A stretch of DNA of 64,000 nucleotides. Origin: Corallochytrium limacisporum Hawaii (lineage: Eukaryota; Protista; Pluriformea). The position numbers were made by a program, and so were the translations under genes. Shown here in pieces: positions 4,459-15,654 of this stretch. The stretch spans positions 62,001 to 126,000 of the forward strand of contig PDIP01000031.1 of assembly GCA_002811645.1 (NCBI GenBank). Reading direction: 5' to 3'. Below the pieces are notes generated by a model, which was given only the letters and a program-made list of their open reading frames with translations, was not told the origin of the DNA and made no database searches. The stretch's first letter is position 1. Every line of letters starts with the position of its first letter.

Positions 4459-5001
4459 CTATGTCAGCGTGTCTTCCGCCCGGATATACTCACCGACATC
4501 AGCCTGATGGAAAGCTACCACAGCTGTAGGGTCCACTTTGCGCATGTCCTGGGTGTTCTTGGCTGTGACTCCGAACCCAAGAGGAATATCGCTCATGCTA
4601 AAGATCACTACCCCTTGGTACTGCGGCGTGTTCTCTGTAATGCGGCCGAGGTGGGCCTTCAGTACATTGTTTCCGTACAGAAAACTCTGTTCACCATTAG
4701 GCTTGAGCCACACCTTATGTTTGCAGTACTGTGCAATGTAGTCAAGACAAGTAATATGCAGGCGGACCTTGCCAGTCTTAGTGAATTTTCCAAAGCAAGT
4801 CCCCAGTGAAACTAAGTGATCCCGAGAAATGTTCGTGGCCCGACGAAGGATCTCGTCATTGGTGTAGTAGATACGCTGTTCATGAAGACGGAACACCCAG
4901 TCACCGTCTGAACGCTGTACTAAGTGCTTAATGTTCTCACCAATGAATTGTGCCAGCTTCTCAAAGAAGCGACGAGTCTCGTCCTCTGTCAATGGCCGCA
5001 T
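4459..5001 (-). CDS. NIP7: 60S ribosome biogenesis protein NIP7 (PUA domain)
   Basis: [74 protein letters not shown]. Start reassigned to ATG 5001, giving a 180 aa protein that begins at the conserved NIP7 N-terminus. Confidence 0.97.
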
Positions 5002-5896
5002 GGTTTCAAGATCGGTCAACAATGATGTAAAATTGTTGGTCATCTCCATACTATAGCTCAAGTGTACAAATTCCGCGAGACCAGATTTTCTTATACCAAC
5101 CGGAAACACATTCAATAATAATGAACCATCTATGGAACCACGTTCTCTGCAAGTAGACCACGGAAAGTGTTGCACCGTGCGTAAGTCTGGAGACTCCGCG
5201 CGACCCGCATGACCCACCAGAAATCTCCCTTGCAAACACCCACCACCCGCCCGTGTGGTCGAGCCGACAGGTATATAATTAGGCCCCTAAACAATCAAAT
5301 TGAAATCCAACCTGAAGATGAATCAAATACTTACGTTCACAGTTATTCGAGAAGAGCGGAAGAAACTATTTTCAATAGTGAATGTACGGAACCTGGCGCC
5401 CCAAAAATCGGAAGCGGGAACTATGGGCGCGACCAATGGCGTACATCTCGGTCGGTATAGGCACTGAAATAGCCGCCTTTCCCAGAGACCCGCCCGCTCG
5501 ACGCAACGGTCATCGAGGGAATATATAGAAATCGATGAGAGTTTCTACATACTCTTAGTACCATGGGTACTGGGTTACGTGTCAGAATCCGCAGCGGCTT
5601 CGCTAAACCCGCCCGGGGCCCCAAACAAGGCCAACAATTTCCTTCTGCTGCCCTGCAGCCCCATCTGCCTCCGTGGCCTTTTCGCAATGCAGCAATCACG
5701 TCGATCACCAGCACGATCTGCAGCTTTTCGAGTGCCTTGTAGCAACATAGTATTGGACTTGTCAGTGTAAACTACTTGAAGGCGTTAGTCGAAATGTGTA
5801 TGACTTATGTCAGTGCGCTGTAGACTAACTTTTTCAAGTGGAAAGTGAACATATTGTTGAGCAACCCGCAGTTTTGATCACCGAGGAGAGTCATCC

Positions 5897-6784
5897 ATGA
5901 GCTGGTATCAGTCGCTCAGTGATATGTCGGCTGCGGCCGTGCATTCTGTTAAAGGCTACTTCGGTGGTAACCAAGAAGAGCCCGATGCTCATACTGATGA
6001 AGAACAAGAGCGCATCATTAGCGAAATAGAGTTCCTAACCGATCGGGACCGCGAAGAACAGAGCCGCAAGTCGCTAGTAGTGGCAGTATGTGGTATTGTG
6101 TCCGCTGGCAAGACCTCCCTGCTGAAGGCACTCTTAAACATCCCGCCGCAGAACCGCACTATGGAGGTGAGTGCCTTGAGCGGAACAACGAAGGAACCGC
6201 GGGCGGTACTGCTGAGGTCGAGCGAGGAAGGCCATAGCAACATTATTCTGCTCGATCTGCCGGGCCTGCACGAAGTTTATCATAATGATGACCTGGACGG
6301 GAACACCCGATACCAGAGGTTCCTGAAGAGCATGTTTCGGAGGGGTGTCATTGACTGTGGAATCATGGTTGTGACGGGAGCGGCGGACTCCAACCAGCGA
6401 AAGGATTACCAGGAACTCAAGCGCATTAGTCAGAGAGTATTTGTCGTACGTTCGAAGTGGGATGACACCGAACATCTGTCAGAGCAGGGACGTGCACGGA
6501 TATTGAAACAGTGGCGCAAGGCTTTAAGTATGGAACCAGAAGAACCGATTTTCACCACCACTGTTCGCGGCTACGACCCTGAAGTCGAAGATTACGGTAA
6601 CGTGCGCACAGAAGGACTGGAAGCCCTGCGCAAAGAGATTCTCAAGCTGATGAAGACCCTAGGTAAGCAAAACGCACTCTACGTGTGGGTCAATGAGGTC
6701 TTCAACGATGAACGGCTCATTATGGGTGCTGCCGTCGCAACGGTCGTACTCAGCATAGGTCGTATGGCTATTCTGGCTTTGTAG
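5897..6784 (+). CDS. Era/MMR_HSR1-like P-loop GTPase with C-terminal hydrophobic tail
   Basis: G1 GIVSAGKTS, G2 SGTT, G3 DLPG, G4-like SKWD; hydrophobic C-terminus LIMGAAVATVVLSIGRMAILAL. Confidence 0.82.
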   Translation: MSWYQSLSDMSAAAVHSVKGYFGGNQEEPDAHTDEEQERIISEIEFLTDRDREEQSRKSLVVAVCGIVSAGKTSLLKALLNIPPQNRTMEVSALSGTTKEPRAVLLRSSEEGHSNIILLDLPGLHEVYHNDDLDGNTRYQRFLKSMFRRGVIDCGIMVVTGAADSNQRKDYQELKRISQRVFVVRSKWDDTEHLSEQGRARILKQWRKALSMEPEEPIFTTTVRGYDPEVEDYGNVRTEGLEALRKEILKLMKTLGKQNALYVWVNEVFNDERLIMGAAVATVVLSIGRMAILAL

Positions 6785-7754: not shown

Positions 7755-8745
7755 GTCAAGACCATACTGTATGCCGAGACACTCCCACATCCCGTTCCCA
7801 GTGCGGTACATTTATTATAGACAACATGCAACTGCGCATAAGTTGGACGAAGGATATAACGTATGACATGAAACTGATACCTTCGTTATAAACTTCTAAA
7901 AGGGAGTCCATTTATATGGGCGGGATATCCCAGGCGCACAAATGCCAACGTTTTGAATTTTTGTTTACATTTCTACATATGTCATGTTTGCACATGAATT
8001 CATAAACACTCTATGAGTTGTGTATAATATACTACCATGTTTTAAAAATATATAGGTATTGCTTATAATCTTCATATTGCGCACGTTCTGGTCGCGGGAG
8101 ACCCGCTCCCGCACAAGTTCTGCCTCGCTGTGGTCCGGACGGGCAAAAATGCCGGCCCCCGGTTTGGAGTTGTTAAATGAAAACAGCTGCACGATCTCCC
8201 AATTCAGGAGTCCAAAAAAAAGAGCAACAAAATAAAGACAAAGGTAGATTAAGGGAAAGGGACAAGGAGATAAAGGAAAAAAGGCAAAAAAGAAAGGGGG
8301 AAAATCGAAATCCCCGCCCGCCCGTGTGTGTTTCTTTTTTTTTTGGGTCCATCCCGCAGTTTAGCGGCAGCTGCGGGAGACTCCTCCTCCTAATTGAGAG
8401 ATGGCGGGGATGGGAGACGTCGGGGGCTGTGGCGCACGGTGGGGAGATAACCTCAACGGGAACACATAGACTTTGGGGGAAGTGGACGGAGGGAAATTAC
8501 ATGTTGATAACGAACGTAAAACGGTGAGGTTTCGGCTGCAGCTTCGCTTTGTGTGTCCGTGGTGTTTGTAGTACAGACGACGATGCCCGTCAAAAGTCTC
8601 ATGATGTGTGAAGGTGTGGTATCAGTGAAGGATTGCATGATGGTATTCCAAACCAACAGAGCTAGAGTTGGATGATGATCACGATTGTGTGAAGCGATCG
8701 GATATCGTTCGGTAGAGAATTCGGCAAGATCTGAATTCTGCAAAG

Positions 8746-11196
8746 ATGGTTCCAGCAGCGGGCAAGGAGCCTGTGGTCAAGGTCTCTGGCCTGGATGAGT
8801 CTGTGACTGAGCAGGAATTAAAGGACTTCTTTTCTGACTTTGGTACCGTCGCGAAAGTAAGAGTAAGGAAGGATTTCACCACCGGTGATGTTATGGGAGA
8901 AGCCTTCATCACCTACACAGAGTGTGATGTGGACGATGTAGTCAAGTATACGAACGGAGCGATCGTGAACGGTCGACTACTGACCGTCGCGCAAGCTGAG
9001 GGCAAGAGGAACACGGTGGCTATCATTGGTGGTACTCTTGCCGGCTACTCCGCTGCCGTCGAGGCCCTAAAGGGTGGTTCCTCTGTTATCTTGTTCGATC
9101 ACCTCGCCGGTGGTGAGGTTCAGAATTCAATTTTCACAGACGTTAGTGCCTGTGGCACGAAGCAACAAGCTGCAGCTGGTGTAAGGGACGATGTGACCAC
9201 CTTCAAAGAGGACATCATCAACAATGCGGGGAAGCAACAGGACAAGACTCTTGCAGACAAGAACCTCGCCTCCCTGGTGGCTGAACGCAGCTGTGAAACA
9301 GTGGAATTTTTGGAAGAGATTCTTGGAGAGCAGCTCGGACACTTACACCACGTGGGCGGACATAGTGTACCGCGTACATTGAACTTCCAGGATCCTAATC
9401 TACCGCTCGGCGTGCGCTGTCTGCGAGCAATGCACAAGAAGATTTCTGAATATCCCCAGTTCCGAATGATGAAGACTGCAACGGTGAGCAAAATCGTCCT
9501 GGATGAGAACGGACTGCGTGTTACTGGCATTGAATACCACCACAACAACATAAGGGCTCAATTGCAGGTAGATACAGTGATCATGGCAACGGGAGGCTTT
9601 GCACACAATCAAGAGCGCCTAGCAGCTCATTGCCCCCAGTACAAGGACATGCCCATTGTTGAGGGCGTACGTGGTTCTGGCCGTGGCTACGATCTACTGG
9701 ACGACTGCGGCGCCCTACTGACCCATATGGATAAGGTTCTTCTGGATCCGTTCTCTGCTTTCAATCTGAAGGAGACGCTGGGAAACAGTAATGTGACGAA
9801 ACCGTCGCACTTGAGGTCCCTTACACCGATGACTAGCTCTGGTGCAATTCTTGTAAATTCTCGAGGTCAGCGCTTTACCAATGAGATGACCAGCTTCTCA
9901 AGTATTTCGCGTGCTCTGCTTACACTCCATCCGGGCAAGGACAGTGTGGACTCAAAACTGCCCTTCGAAATCAGCTGTGCAGCTCTGATAATTCCCACCT
10001 CTCAGGGTGGTGACCATGGTCGTGTACTTGATGTCTATGCCAAGGCGGGGCCTCTGGTGTGCGGCACCGTAGAAGAAGTGTGTGAGAAACTAGGCATCGA
10101 TGCCGACGGTCTGACTGACACCCTTCAACAATGCTCCGATGAGACCGTGGACGATGCCTTTGACCGAAAGTGGTCGATCAGGCCACATGCAATAAGTCAG
10201 AGCGGCGAAATTTGTGCGGCTCTAGTCACCCCTGCAATCCTGTACACCATCGGCGGCGCTGGTACCAATTTACACGCTCAGGTCTTGCAAGCGACAACCA
10301 TGCAGTTCATCGCTGGCTTGTACGCGGCTGGTGAGTGCAGTTCGGGTCCTGGGGGTGAGACCGCGTTGGTTGGCACCCCGATTCTCACTAGTGTAGTAAT
10401 GGGTCGCATTGCTGGAAAGTCAGCAAGTCATGCGGAGTTGGCTGTGCCAGCTTTGCGTCCAAATGCATGGGTACCTCTGGCCATGGACCGGGTCATCAAA
10501 ATGTCCCCGACCACGTCGCTTTTCCGCTTTTCTTTGCCATCCAAATACCACCAAACCGGTCTTGGAATCGGTCAGTACATTTGCGTGAAGGCTAATATTG
10601 AAGGTGAGGATGTAGTGCGCTATTATTCACCAATCTCTCGTCCGGAAACCTTGGGCCAGATTGATCTGCTTATCAAGATCAACGTCGGTGGTAAGTTCAC
10701 CGAATATCTAGATCAGATGAAACCTGGTGACTTCCTAGACTGGAAGGGTCCCGTGGCCGGCCTGGATCTTGAAGTTGGTCGGAAACGCCGCATTGGCATG
10801 CTCGCGGGTGGCACAGGCATTGCGCCCATGATACAGCTCATCCGTTCCCATATGCTGTACCAATCTAAGGTCGGTAATGACAATTTGTTTGATCTTCGTC
10901 TGATCTTTGGCGTCAAGGACGAGAGTGAGCTGCTGTTGAGGGACCAACTGGAGGGGCACGCGCAGCATCATCCCGGTGTCCTTGACATCTACTATGTGCT
11001 GCAGAACCCGCCTGCAGGATGGACGATGGGTACTGGCTTCATTACCAAAGAGATGATTCAAGAACGGTGCGCACCTCCGAGCGATGAAGATGCCCTCATT
11101 GTAATCTGTGGCCCCCCTGTCTTCTGCAATGCTATGAAGGACGCGCTGAATAGCTTAGGCTACCAGCAGGGCAAGAACTACTACAGTTACCTCTAA
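8746..11196 (+). CDS. RRM + flavocytochrome c/fumarate-reductase-like FAD domain (catalytically degenerate) + NADH:cytochrome b5 reductase-like domain fusion
   Basis: RRM at aa ~10-85 (VKVSGL...MGEAFITY). FAD-binding/FRD fold (IIGGTLAGYSAAVEA, GGHSVPRT, VIMATGGF, GAILVNSRGQRFTNE, GLYAAGE). b5-reductase motifs (RYYSPIS, GKFT, GMLAGGTGIAPM, ICGPP). One uninterrupted ORF. Confidence 0.9.
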   Translation: MVPAAGKEPVVKVSGLDESVTEQELKDFFSDFGTVAKVRVRKDFTTGDVMGEAFITYTECDVDDVVKYTNGAIVNGRLLTVAQAEGKRNTVAIIGGTLAGYSAAVEALKGGSSVILFDHLAGGEVQNSIFTDVSACGTKQQAAAGVRDDVTTFKEDIINNAGKQQDKTLADKNLASLVAERSCETVEFLEEILGEQLGHLHHVGGHSVPRTLNFQDPNLPLGVRCLRAMHKKISEYPQFRMMKTATVSKIVLDENGLRVTGIEYHHNNIRAQLQVDTVIMATGGFAHNQERLAAHCPQYKDMPIVEGVRGSGRGYDLLDDCGALLTHMDKVLLDPFSAFNLKETLGNSNVTKPSHLRSLTPMTSSGAILVNSRGQRFTNEMTSFSSISRALLTLHPGKDSVDSKLPFEISCAALIIPTSQGGDHGRVLDVYAKAGPLVCGTVEEVCEKLGIDADGLTDTLQQCSDETVDDAFDRKWSIRPHAISQSGEICAALVTPAILYTIGGAGTNLHAQVLQATTMQFIAGLYAAGECSSGPGGETALVGTPILTSVVMGRIAGKSASHAELAVPALRPNAWVPLAMDRVIKMSPTTSLFRFSLPSKYHQTGLGIGQYICVKANIEGEDVVRYYSPISRPETLGQIDLLIKINVGGKFTEYLDQMKPGDFLDWKGPVAGLDLEVGRKRRIGMLAGGTGIAPMIQLIRSHMLYQSKVGNDNLFDLRLIFGVKDESELLLRDQLEGHAQHHPGVLDIYYVLQNPPAGWTMGTGFITKEMIQERCAPPSDEDALIVICGPPVFCNAMKDALNSLGYQQGKNYYSYL

Positions 11197-11449: not shown

Positions 11450-12553
11450 TCACTCTTGCTCATCTTCCCGACCCATGACCGGCATGGTGCAACCGGGTTT
11501 CCGTACCGTGAGGAATGTGTACTTTTCTGCGTCCTGCAGACTCCAGTCCCGAGTGTTGTAGTTGCCGCACAGACGTTCCGGGGCGTAAAGCCGTTGCACC
11601 TCGAAGCCGCGCCTCTCGCACTCGGCAATGAACTCAACAACGCCGTCGCGGTCCTCGCTGAGCACTTCATAGAATACACCGCCGGGCTTCAGCACACGAT
11701 CAATTACCACTGGCAAGGTCTTCACGCTCAATAAATTGTACGTTAATTCCGCACCGATTGCAATGTCACACGGCTCGTCAATTTCCATGTTCTTAAGCAT
11801 ATCTTCGTCCAGCAGACAGGCCAGTTCACTGTTCCCACTGTCGTCTTGGCGGTCTGGGCTCGCACAGTCGCAACGGAAGCGACTGGGATCTTCAATTGGT
11901 CCTATTTCGTGGCCCATGTGGCATTGCTCAGCGCAGTCAACGCAAATGCCGCATGCATCATCGTCTGGGAAGCAGGTCAAGCATCGCCGCCAGGGCTGTA
12001 CAGCAAAGGACTTCTTCCCGTAGACATAGCGCGTGCACTTCAAGTGTTTGTCCCGGTCCCCTGAATCTTCACTTCCGTTTAGCTGCTCCACCTCTGTGGC
12101 AAAGGTATCCCAGTCCAACCGACCACAGATGCACTTTGCAGCGATTTCAGGACGGTCGTCTCCGCTCTCTTCCGGGTCGCGACTGTTGATCTTGACATTG
12201 TATTCCAAGTTCTCCACAACCGTGGGCAGATAGTCAGTGAGAATCACGCGAGACGCCTTCTCAGCGGCCACAATGCCCGCGAGTCCGACGCCTGCGCCGA
12301 GCTCGATGACAGACTTGCCCGCGAATATGGTGTCTAAGTTCTCGTGGACCCACCTGGCCAGTACGACACCACCGTCCCACAACGCACAGCCTAGGCCCCC
12401 AGAAACAATCGACAGTTCCCGCAGATGATATTTCTGTTTTCGCTTCGTACCCTGACTCAGATTTATGGTCTTGCGCTGGTATTTTCTTGCAGATAGGGCA
12501 AGAGTGCGCCAGTCAATGTTGATCTCACCATTCTTCGGTCGGTTGTTCAACAT
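11450..12553 (-). CDS. METTL21/Methyltransf_16-family protein methyltransferase with inserted UBR-type zinc finger
   Basis: GCALWDGGVVLARW, motif I VIELGAGVGLAG, post-I ILTDY, LDW, motif II-like DIAIGAELTY. Insert CLTC...ICVDCAEQCHMGH...FRCDC. Confidence 0.88.
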   Translation of the reverse strand: MLNNRPKNGEINIDWRTLALSARKYQRKTINLSQGTKRKQKYHLRELSIVSGGLGCALWDGGVVLARWVHENLDTIFAGKSVIELGAGVGLAGIVAAEKASRVILTDYLPTVVENLEYNVKINSRDPEESGDDRPEIAAKCICGRLDWDTFATEVEQLNGSEDSGDRDKHLKCTRYVYGKKSFAVQPWRRCLTCFPDDDACGICVDCAEQCHMGHEIGPIEDPSRFRCDCASPDRQDDSGNSELACLLDEDMLKNMEIDEPCDIAIGAELTYNLLSVKTLPVVIDRVLKPGGVFYEVLSEDRDGVVEFIAECERRGFEVQRLYAPERLCGNYNTRDWSLQDAEKYTFLTVRKPGCTMPVMGREDEQE

Positions 12554-13170: not shown

Positions 13171-15654
13171 ATGAGCTTCAGCCAGTCACAACAGAGGCAG
13201 TTGATTCCTCGCATTCTCAGTGCCTATGAGAATATTCCGGGCGGACCGCCCCGTGACCCGGACATGGCTCTCGCTCTGACTGCGCAGGTAGTAGACCATT
13301 TGCGGAAGAGCTTCCCAGAATATGGGCGAAGGCCTCGTAAGCCCTTTGAGAACATGGTCAGCAGTACCATTGACCGTATGATTGGCATGAATGCCCTGGA
13401 TGAACTGTTTGCAAATCTAAACGAGGGCATTGACGAAAACAACGATCCTGGGAGTGCCAGTGAAGACGACGAAACCGAAATCCGCGCCATGGAGGCTGCC
13501 ACACCGAAGCACAATACTTTGAATCAGAGTCTGGCTAAGGCCTATGCGGCACAGAATGAACAGACACAGCGGCGACGGAAGCGACAACAGAAAGGTACAA
13601 ACGCATTGCCGTCAAAGCGGTCCAGAAATGACCCGGATACCGCATCGTCAGGAGGACACGAGTATAACGCTTCGATACCGAAGGTAAGGCTTGGAGACCT
13701 GGGTGGCGTGGACGACTGCATTCAAGATATCCGGGAACTCATTGAGTATCCTATGAGCCATCCGGAAATTTATGCACACTTGGGTGTGAGCCCACCACGG
13801 GGTGTACTGTTGCACGGACCACCGGGTTGTGGCAAAACCATGCTGGCACATGCAATAGCAGGGGAGTTGCAGGTGCCGCTGCTAAAGATTAGCGCTCCAG
13901 AGATTGTCAGCGGGATGTCTGGCGAGAGCGAGGCCAAGATTCGGTCGCTCTTCCAGCAGGCCCAGGAGGTGGCCCCATGCATCCTGTTCATTGACGAGAT
14001 TGATGCTATAACCCCAAAGCGTGAAACCGCCGCTCGCGAAATGGAAAGGCGCATCGTTGCGCAGCTTTTGACTTGCATGGACACCCTCGGAGGCAACGAC
14101 AACAACAAGAACGATGAAGATAGGGACCAGGACGGTAACCTGAGCATTGCCGAAACCACCTTGAAGCCGGTGATCTGCATTGGTGCAACCAACAGACCTG
14201 ATTCCCTTGACCCAGCGCTCCGACGTGCGGGTCGGTTTGACCGCGAAATTTCTCTCGGCATTCCGGATGAGAAGGCACGAGCGCGGATTTTGCAGGTCAT
14301 CACCAAAGGCTTACGCCTCGATGGCGACTTCGACTACCTTTCTTTAGCTCGAAAGACGCCGGGCTTTGTTGGTGCGGATTTGAATGCGCTAGCCAAGGAG
14401 GCAGCTGTGCTGGCCATTAATCGCATTTTCGGTGACATCCTCAAGCGGGAAGACGAGGTTCCCAACAATGTTGACGATACGATGGCCGACAGCAATCAAA
14501 TGAATGGCACCATGGACGTAGATGGGGCAGCCCAAGGTGTATCCCATGTCGGAGAATCGAACGCCGTGGGAGAGAGTGTGAGCAACACCAGTCGAGACAG
14601 CAATACGCGCAATGCGGCATCCGTACACCTACGTATGAATAAGGACCCATTGCCCCCAGAGGTCTTGGCAAACCTGAGCATTACTATGCAGGACTTTGAA
14701 GCTGCGATCGACAAGGTACAGCCGAGCGCCCAGCGCGAAGGTTTTGCTACGGCACCAAACGTCACATGGGAAGACGTTGGTGCCCTGGATCATGTGCGGG
14801 ATGAGCTACGTTTTGCTGTGCTGGAACCAGTACGTCACCCCGAAAAATTTGAAGAAGCCGGCATCAGTGTACCACCTGGCATTCTACTCTACGGTCCACC
14901 CGGGTGTGGCAAAACTTTGCTCGCCAAAGCGGTCGCAGGGGAGACTGGCATGAACTTTATCTCCATCAAGGGTCCCGAGCTGCTGAACAAATATGTGGGT
15001 GAAAGTGAGCGGGCTATCCGTCTAGTCTTCCAGCGTGCCCGTACCAGTGCGCCCTGCGTCATATTTTTCGACGAACTAGACAGTGTTTGTCCAAAGCGTG
15101 GCAGTAGCCAAGATTCCAACGTCACGGAACGGGTGGTCAACACTTTGCTCACTGAACTGGACGGTCTGGAGAGCCGCAAAGGTATTTTTGTCATTGCCGC
15201 CACGAATCGTCCGGACATCATCGATCCCGCTATGTTACGACCGGGTCGTCTAGATAAGCTCCTCTATGTGGCGCTGCCGACCAAGCAGGAGAGACTACAC
15301 ATATTTAAGACCCTCACCCGCAAGATTCCACTGGACCCAACTTGCAACATGCAGGAGATTGCAGAAATGCCGGGGCTCACAGGCTACTCGGGCGCCGACT
15401 GCGCAGCTCTCGTCCGCGAGGCCGCCACCTTGGCCTTACGCGAATGTATCGACCATGGTCTGCCCTCAGTGCTGGTACAGAAGAAGCACTTTCTGGCCGC
15501 AGTGCCAAAGGTCTTACCGTCCATCTCCGATCGCGACGAACGCATGTACATGCGCATGAGTCAGCGTCTGCGACGCGCCCGTGGCCATCTCGAACCCGAA
15601 GACGGCAGTGGAAGTGGCAAGGCTACCAATAATCCCGCACCTACCAATACGTAA
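13171..15654 (+). CDS. NVL: Nuclear valosin-containing protein-like AAA+ ATPase (NVL2/Rix7)
   Basis: Two AAA modules (GPPGCGKT twice; FIDEID and FFDELD). EIVSGMSGESEAKIR, AREMERRIVAQLLTCMD, ELLNKYVGESER. N-terminal EYGRRPRKPF segment and a basic NLS. Confidence 0.95.
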   Translation: MSFSQSQQRQLIPRILSAYENIPGGPPRDPDMALALTAQVVDHLRKSFPEYGRRPRKPFENMVSSTIDRMIGMNALDELFANLNEGIDENNDPGSASEDDETEIRAMEAATPKHNTLNQSLAKAYAAQNEQTQRRRKRQQKGTNALPSKRSRNDPDTASSGGHEYNASIPKVRLGDLGGVDDCIQDIRELIEYPMSHPEIYAHLGVSPPRGVLLHGPPGCGKTMLAHAIAGELQVPLLKISAPEIVSGMSGESEAKIRSLFQQAQEVAPCILFIDEIDAITPKRETAAREMERRIVAQLLTCMDTLGGNDNNKNDEDRDQDGNLSIAETTLKPVICIGATNRPDSLDPALRRAGRFDREISLGIPDEKARARILQVITKGLRLDGDFDYLSLARKTPGFVGADLNALAKEAAVLAINRIFGDILKREDEVPNNVDDTMADSNQMNGTMDVDGAAQGVSHVGESNAVGESVSNTSRDSNTRNAASVHLRMNKDPLPPEVLANLSITMQDFEAAIDKVQPSAQREGFATAPNVTWEDVGALDHVRDELRFAVLEPVRHPEKFEEAGISVPPGILLYGPPGCGKTLLAKAVAGETGMNFISIKGPELLNKYVGESERAIRLVFQRARTSAPCVIFFDELDSVCPKRGSSQDSNVTERVVNTLLTELDGLESRKGIFVIAATNRPDIIDPAMLRPGRLDKLLYVALPTKQERLHIFKTLTRKIPLDPTCNMQEIAEMPGLTGYSGADCAALVREAATLALRECIDHGLPSVLVQKKHFLAAVPKVLPSISDRDERMYMRMSQRLRRARGHLEPEDGSGSGKATNNPAPTNT

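Follow-up and report, generated by a model that had tools for sequence, protein, structure and literature searches.

A protist fusion of an RRM, a fumarate reductase domain and an NADH-cytochrome b5 reductase, with a degenerate middle domain in Corallochytrium limacisporum

The window considered here is a stretch of 64,000 nucleotides from Corallochytrium limacisporum Hawaii (contig PDIP01000031.1, positions 62,001 to 126,000). At 8746..11196 of its plus strand, a single gene encodes an RNA recognition motif (RRM), a fumarate reductase (FRD) domain and an NADH-cytochrome b5 reductase (b5R) module. The FRD domain has lost most of its catalytic residues and is very likely a pseudoenzyme, and the b5R module appears intact. 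In the preferred explanation, to which we give an even chance, the degenerate domain serves as a scaffold that holds together an RRM used for docking and a working NADH diaphorase, so that the protein would be a locally targeted NADH electron donor.

The gene and its transcripts

The gene is one intronless open reading frame (ORF) of 816 codons without internal stops and joins the three modules, as the initial annotation stated. Four Pfam matches exceed the curated cut-offs: RRM_1 at residues 12–79 (E 9e-12), FAD_binding_2 at 91–541 (E 5e-37), FAD_binding_6 at 580–671 (E 6e-26) and NAD_binding_1 at 685–798 (E 1e-20). According to AlphaFold and Foldseek, residues 1–90 have the RRM fold, and the remainder has the Fcc3/Osm1 and b5R folds. 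Neither a signal peptide nor an N-terminal hydrophobic anchor was found in the hydropathy profile of the protein. All genes inspected in the scanned genome (24,109,830 bases in 286 contigs) are without introns; the published value for C. limacisporum is 0.0 introns for each coding kbp (PMC5560861).

The whole ORF is covered, without joints, by a DNA contig and by single contigs of two 2015 runs that are probably RNA, the RNA status of the runs being a software guess and the coverage resting on assembled contigs rather than raw reads. Transcripts crossing the junction of the RRM and FRD domains (about position 9000) had been proposed as a check of the fusion, and both probable-RNA contigs cross it jointlessly. 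They begin at 8673 and, in a second strain, at 8402, delimiting a probable 5' leader (8402..8745, plus strand), and leave 8000–8380 bare, as transcripts would, the contigs having no power to show the true transcript start or strand. The gene is real and apparently expressed. A strongly purine-rich A/G tract is seen at 8200–8300, upstream of the probable transcript start.

The fumarate reductase domain

The middle domain (residues 89–562, 9010..10431, plus strand) is a degenerate FRD of the flavocytochrome-c/Osm1 type. Residue equivalences were derived from alignments to the solved Ifc3 and Osm1 and to 56 intact FRDs, that is, from sequence alignment and not from superposition. With the Fcc3 numbering given first, the replacements are H365 to D334, E378 to S354, R402 to F384, H504 to L499 and R544 to A540. 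The initial annotation had noted the loss of the two histidines and of R402 and R544, at nucleotide positions that proved correct on re-reading, and the comparison with Ifc3, Osm1 and the intact FRDs bears this out. It also considered the E378/R381 relay to be gone. This is true of E378, but R381 is probably retained as R357, which sits 23 residues past the H365 position in a register identical to that of intact homologs and is followed by an insertion of 5–6 residues; the pairwise alignment with Ifc3 by itself reads R381 as lost. R357 is the only one of the six Fcc3 catalytic residues retained. All three motifs of the soluble FRDs are affected: Motif I by F384, L499 and A540, Motif II by D334, Motif III by S354 and F384.

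The flavin site has decayed as well. The FAD scaffold was initially described as kept, and the ATGG and GE motifs are indeed present, together with the ribose-binding D118, Y500 and many structural glycines. However, of the elements defining the flavin site of soluble FRDs, GxGxxG has Thr97 for its second glycine and the flavin-adjacent GGNS..SG loop is replaced; further, the G-N-S helix start has become G-T-P, placing Pro545 at the start of the flavin-facing helix. The overall fold is recognisable, with Foldseek matching the flavin and clamp domains to Fcc3 and Osm1 at E 1e-27 to 1e-25. Of the 76 near-invariant FRD columns, 44 (58%) are kept, chiefly glycines and core positions, compared with 71–72 (93–95%) in the intact relatives described below and 66% in Amoebidium. 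The full-length AlphaFold2 (AF2) model, built from five sequences with a confidence (pLDDT) of 63, has low confidence at the active-site loops.

R402, H504 and R544 are conserved even in relatives that have switched to acrylate, methacrylate or urocanate (10.1101/2022.01.20.477176; PMC7921117). Since all three are lost here together with the flavin contacts, a pseudoenzyme is to be preferred over a new specificity, and we regard this assignment as very likely. Its FAD binding is probably poor or absent. Of the two options in the initial annotation, a pseudoenzyme or an enzyme with a new substrate, the former agrees with the dead appearance of the site, and the latter is unlikely, as the flavin loops have decayed along with the catalytic residues and none of the substituted residues recurs in Amoebidium.

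The genome contains an intact Osm1-like FRD at positions 1330–2934 of locus L002 (G000:C22), in which no catalytic motif is missing; a hydrophobic anchor at its N-terminus (hydropathy 2.9) means that it is probably targeted to the secretory pathway. The third FAD_binding_2 match in the genome is stronger and is probably SdhA. No ApbE match was found in the 816-residue protein or in the genome.

The family

The relatives were recovered by a HMMER search of cluster representatives; a word-based homolog search missed every relative bearing an RRM. Four proteins scored far above all the rest, namely those of Mantamonas plastica (CRuMs; P0060), the ichthyosporean Amoebidium parasiticum (P0061), a metagenomic eukaryote (P0062) and Thecamonas trahens (XP_013755517, carrying a plain fumarate reductase name in NCBI). 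A marine apusomonad-like protein (P0221) and two fragments (L008 and L091) also belong to the family. All six full-length members carry an RRM-like domain towards the N-terminus, although that of Thecamonas is below the Pfam threshold, yet alignable. The fusion, present in five other eukaryotes, is not a one-off. As members within 50% identity of a representative were hidden from the search, this range is a lower bound. The architecture was not found in animals or fungi within the homolog searches made; a metagenome scan yielded nothing but additional copies from the P0062 organism, and feature searches of the ESM Atlas returned generic clusters of FRDs, all scoring under 0.8. In agreement with the initial claim of novelty, no description of an RRM-FRD-b5R protein was found in the literature searched, which covered few subscription papers.

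In the tree of the FRD and b5R domains, with the RRM excluded, the six members form one clade (100/100) among 39 FRD-b5R fusions, and the family clade is also present in the b5R-only tree (SH-aLRT 99). The members share the three domains, the loop motif with F44 and the b5R signature residues described below. The Corallochytrium and Amoebidium proteins are sisters in the former tree (100/98), and the Amoebidium protein is the closest homolog of the Corallochytrium one. Part of this grouping could be due to long-branch attraction; it is backed by a shared G>T change and by the closest RRM (36%).

The sequences show the family to be present in CRuMs, apusomonads and Teretosporea, and this span rules out a recent lineage-specific fusion. 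If vertically inherited, the architecture probably predates the split of CRuMs, apusomonads and opisthokonts. All six Fcc3 catalytic residues are kept in Mantamonas, Thecamonas, P0062 and P0221. The Amoebidium protein retains H365, E378, R381, H504 and R544, has lysine at R402 and has lost the flavin loop. The fusion with the RRM is far older than the loss of catalysis, for the majority of the members still have the look of working fumarate reductases.

Several members have peculiarities of their own. The P0062 protein (L007, L011, L012) carries, at about its residues 140–200 and within an otherwise intact FRD domain, a long His-rich insertion, a possible metal-binding loop. The Amoebidium sequence departs from the alignment after about residue 800, with CGPP gone, probably due to a frameshift in the transcript assembly. 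Both fragments keep the R544 motif; L091 changes frame between the two b5R subdomains (about 484–491), likely an error in an A-run, and L008 has an apparent intron at about 240–450. The Mantamonas protein has an N-terminal extension (residues 1–85) with a hydrophobic stretch (hydropathy 2.7), absent from other members; it may be a genuine anchor or else 5' leader sequence that was translated along with the protein.

Evolutionary rates and selection

The three domains evolve at different rates. In the FRD tree, the end branches of Corallochytrium and Amoebidium are 3.97 and 2.79, compared with 0.4–1.2 in intact members; the corresponding b5R branches measure 0.31 and 0.39, compared with 0.2–0.33, the two trees being built under different models, so that branch lengths are comparable only within one tree. 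The identity of the Corallochytrium FRD domain to other members is 28–32%, and distant intact members share 44–48%. The respective values are 47–59% and 49–58% for b5R and 24–36% and 20–33% for the RRM. By these measures the FRD domain evolves several-fold faster in Corallochytrium, with the RRM and b5R at ordinary rates, and the Amoebidium and Corallochytrium genes display a graded decay of FRD.

A comparison of two strains yields seven synonymous and four nonsynonymous changes (dN/dS about 0.18, p=0.006), a ratio that indicates purifying selection on the gene between them. All four amino-acid changes fall within the FRD domain, too few for the clustering to reach significance. The graded decay of FRD combined with purifying selection suggests, therefore, that the gene is selected for something other than fumarate reduction. 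Among the alleles of the P0062 organism, RRM changes are too few to gauge constraint.

The b5R module

The FAD-binding beta-barrel of b5R (residues 568–671, 10447..10758, with RxYS at R625) is followed by the NADH-binding domain (residues 682–816, 10789..11193, with GGTG and CGPP), both on the plus strand. RxY(S/T), GxxS/T, GGTG, CGPP and the near-terminal aromatic are all in place. The best match is the Physarum NADH-b5R, 2eix (E 1e-52), with a similar specificity loop and a TM score of 0.87 by target length. Thus the b5R motifs are kept, as initially read, and with intact flavin and pyridine-nucleotide motifs we are highly confident that the module, on its looks, would still accept hydride from NADH.

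Eight positions (L704, E/Q706, K708, G710, K724, H738, E/N754 and M761) hardly vary among eight sequences of the family, and these residues are seldom seen in 133 other b5Rs. Four of them, L704, K708, K724 and H738, are the same in 8/8 family sequences but reach at most 3% elsewhere. By analogy with the general ferredoxin-NADP reductase (FNR) fold, L704–G710 and H738 would occupy adjacent helices at a distance from the catalytic cleft and may form a candidate docking surface. This family-specific patch co-occurs with the RRM.

The protein ends in S-Y-L (11185–11193). The terminus S-[YF]-[LMIC] is found in 24 of 50 FRD-b5R fusions and A-K-L in four of them, compared with 5/78 for other b5Rs. 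The tripeptide may be a non-canonical peroxisomal targeting signal (PTS1), parallel to that of the glycosomal FRDg, or merely a structural feature of the FNR fold, its terminal aromatic; a search of the literature for these C-terminal tripeptides as PTS1 found nothing. A peroxisomal location, if true, would speak against RNA binding.

The RRM

The RRM (residues 9–85, 8770..9000, plus strand) is non-canonical. Its beta-alpha-beta-beta-alpha-beta fold is recognised by Pfam, AF2 (pLDDT 78) and Foldseek (TMq 0.71–0.80), the nearest structures being RNA-binding RRMs, and its profile score (E 5e-12) is on par with many other RRMs of the genome. The RNA-facing positions are K12 (RNP2-2), E52 (RNP1-3) and F54 (RNP1-5), so that one of the three canonical aromatics is present. 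Across the six members, RNP2-2 is K, H, E, V, V, T and RNP1-3 is E, D, S, S, E, E, with no aromatic residues at either position, compared with 22/29 and 21/29, respectively, in other RRMs of the genome; RNP1-5 is F, Y, Y, V, V, E (aromatic in 3/6, versus 27/29). All six domains are net acidic, with charges of -3 to -6. The sole invariant residue outside the core is F44 (8875–8877) in the beta2-beta3 loop, found in 6/6 members and in 2/29 other RRMs of the genome.

The initial name of a redox-coupled RNA-binding protein is thus unsupported as it was put, given the missing RNP2-2 and RNP1-3 aromatics and the acidic domains. From its residues, we rate RNA binding by the Corallochytrium RRM at slightly below an even chance. 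Docking on a protein surface is marginally favoured over canonical reading of single-stranded RNA.

Another idea considered was that the RRM shuttles FMN and takes the place of the ApbE/flavinylation segment. This was rejected: the loop is that between beta2 and beta3 of an ordinary RRM and does not have the flavinylation consensus, the genome gives no ApbE match, and there exist fusions without an RRM. No flavinylation motif Dxx(s/t)(s/g)AS was seen on reading the 816-residue protein.

Possible functions

The ancestor of the family may have been a one-chain NADH:fumarate reductase with the RRM as a targeting or regulatory add-on, NADH being oxidised at the b5R flavin and fumarate reduced at the FRD flavin. 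In Corallochytrium, the FRD domain would be inert and be kept for its fold, as a spacer or scaffold. The b5R would take hydride from NADH and pass electrons to an outside acceptor, for example, cytochrome b5 or a Dph3-like iron protein, and the RRM would act as a docking module, attaching through the invariant loop Phe44 to a protein surface, either the family-specific patch on its own b5R or a shared partner. Since FRD-b5R fusions without an RRM are common, electron transfer does not depend on the RRM. In yeast, Cbr1 feeds electrons to Dph3/Elongator, that is, into tRNA and EF2 modification (PMC8153317), which may serve, by analogy, as a precedent for b5R electrons in translation-related chemistry.

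Several observations weigh against this scaffold-and-docking model. The AF2 full-length model has no readable contacts between the RRM and b5R, and such a contact is suggested by co-occurrence alone; the contrast at L704–G710 is partly due to a gap in other b5Rs. The RRM keeps F54 and the basic sheet residues K12, K37, R39 and R41, compatible with RNA binding, and RRMs of the PTB/hnRNP L type bind RNA without the RNP2-2 and RNP1-3 aromatics. The Osm1-like paralog has an N-terminal anchor and therefore might be no substitute for an enzyme of the cytosol. The distinct full-length members found number only six, and the FRD-only tree breaks up their clade (8% of bootstrap trees), because the Corallochytrium and Amoebidium branches are long.

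An alternative, the one put forward initially, is an RNA-tethered redox protein, the RRM binding RNA non-canonically by the F44 loop, F54 and basic beta2 and bringing NADH reducing power to a ribonucleoprotein (RNP). The target could be the ribosome, a tRNA-modifying complex or mRNA, or NADH occupancy could switch RNA binding. The genuine RRM fold with RNA-binding nearest structures, the retention of the domain in CRuMs, apusomonads and holozoans with no acceleration in Corallochytrium, the invariance of F44 and the Cbr1-Dph3-Elongator precedent are all consistent with this; however, the loss of canonical aromatics, the negative charge, the lack of family-wide conservation of the basic beta2 residues and the absence of any sequence sign of allosteric coupling make it unlikely. 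Slightly more doubtful is its extension to the whole family as an ancient class, in which the RRM would bind RNA or RNP via the loop Phe and b5R would deliver electrons there, or the NADH state would govern binding, Teretosporea having shed fumarate reduction and kept the RNA-linked role.

It is improbable that the FRD-like domain has kept its FAD and relays electrons, or that it takes a new, non-carboxylate substrate. The domain is of full length with few indels and keeps D118, ATGG, GE, Y500 and many glycines, and distant members of the fold (ketosteroid and cyclohexanone dehydrogenases) do use such substrates. Still, Thr97, the missing GGNS..SG loop and Pro545 argue against FAD binding, the substitutes are mostly apolar and differ from those of Amoebidium, and a KstD-like substrate finds no support, as a KstD-annotated protein aligns no better than FRDs (27%, in the C-terminal part only).

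Even less can be said for the possibility that only b5R matters, as a third cytosolic b5R, with the RRM and FRD as slowly decaying remnants. The strong acceleration of FRD, the position of all four strain changes and the low RRM identities would fit, but the Corallochytrium RRM is no more diverged than those of intact members and scores well (E 5e-12), the 470-residue FRD remains open and of full length in both the Amoebidium and Corallochytrium lineages, and the family-specific b5R residues are kept. Finally, an assembly or gene-prediction artefact joining separate genes, suggested by nothing except the rarity of the architecture, is ruled out by the unbroken ORF, the jointless contigs of DNA and two probable RNA assemblies, and the fusions in five other eukaryotes.

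Nature offers here a series that begins with the intact enzyme of Mantamonas and Thecamonas, continues with the partly decayed one of Amoebidium and ends with the likely pseudoenzyme of Corallochytrium. It sets apart a probable second function in the RRM and b5R of this hitherto undescribed, as far as the literature search went, enzyme architecture. If the RRM binds RNA, the protein would tie RNA biology specifically to the NADH pool in organisms closely related to animals; if it binds protein, a clear case of an RRM regulating a metabolic enzyme. Stable transfection of Corallochytrium exists (10.1101/2020.11.12.379420), hence the function is experimentally accessible.

Genomic neighbourhood

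Judging by translations, the upstream neighbours are a NIP7-like gene (4459–5235, minus strand) and a small GTPase-like gene (5897–6784, plus strand). A methyltransferase-like gene with a Cys-rich insert (11450–12553, minus strand) and an NVL/Rix7-type AAA ATPase-like gene (13171–15654, plus strand) lie downstream. There is no synteny with other family loci, whose flanks differ (MT-A70 by P0062, Costars-LIM by P0221).

Comparison with known systems

The kinetoplastid NADH-dependent FRDg and FRDm have the structure ApbE-FRD-b5R (10.1101/2020.12.30.424822). As in these proteins, FRD is followed by a C-terminal b5R-like domain with related motifs in one chain; unlike them, the Corallochytrium protein has an RRM in place of the flavinylation motif and ApbE, and its FRD site appears dead. 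Yeast Osm1/Frd1 and Shewanella Fcc3/Ifc3 are the best sequence and fold matches to the middle domain, but here other residues stand at five of the six catalytic positions and at several FAD contacts, there is no haem domain, and the RRM and b5R are fused. In function the protein would resemble the b5R half of the kinetoplastid NADH-FRD. By its domains and residues, it is not a member of that family, nor of the active soluble FRDs.

The b5R module matches the known NADH-cytochrome b5 reductases (Physarum 2eix, yeast Cbr1, human CYB5R3) at E 1e-52 to 1e-39 and has the motifs for FAD and NADH intact; the Corallochytrium protein differs in having no membrane anchor, a 560-residue N-terminal extension and an extra helix extension at residues 704–712. 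An RRM is joined to a catalytic module in ALKBH8 and Cyp33/PPIE, which are unrelated enzymes, and we know of no RRM-enzyme fusion with a flavoreductase partner.

Closest are the FRD-b5R fusions without an RRM, from Allomyces (P0002), Fabomonas (P0064), an Nk52-labelled source (P0218) and environmental samples, for which no characterisation was found. They lack the family-specific b5R residues, and those read (P0002, P0005, P0064, P0218) have intact fumarate motifs. They share with the Corallochytrium protein the two catalytic modules and the S-[YF]-[LM] C-terminus, and form the nearest outgroup of the family in the trees.

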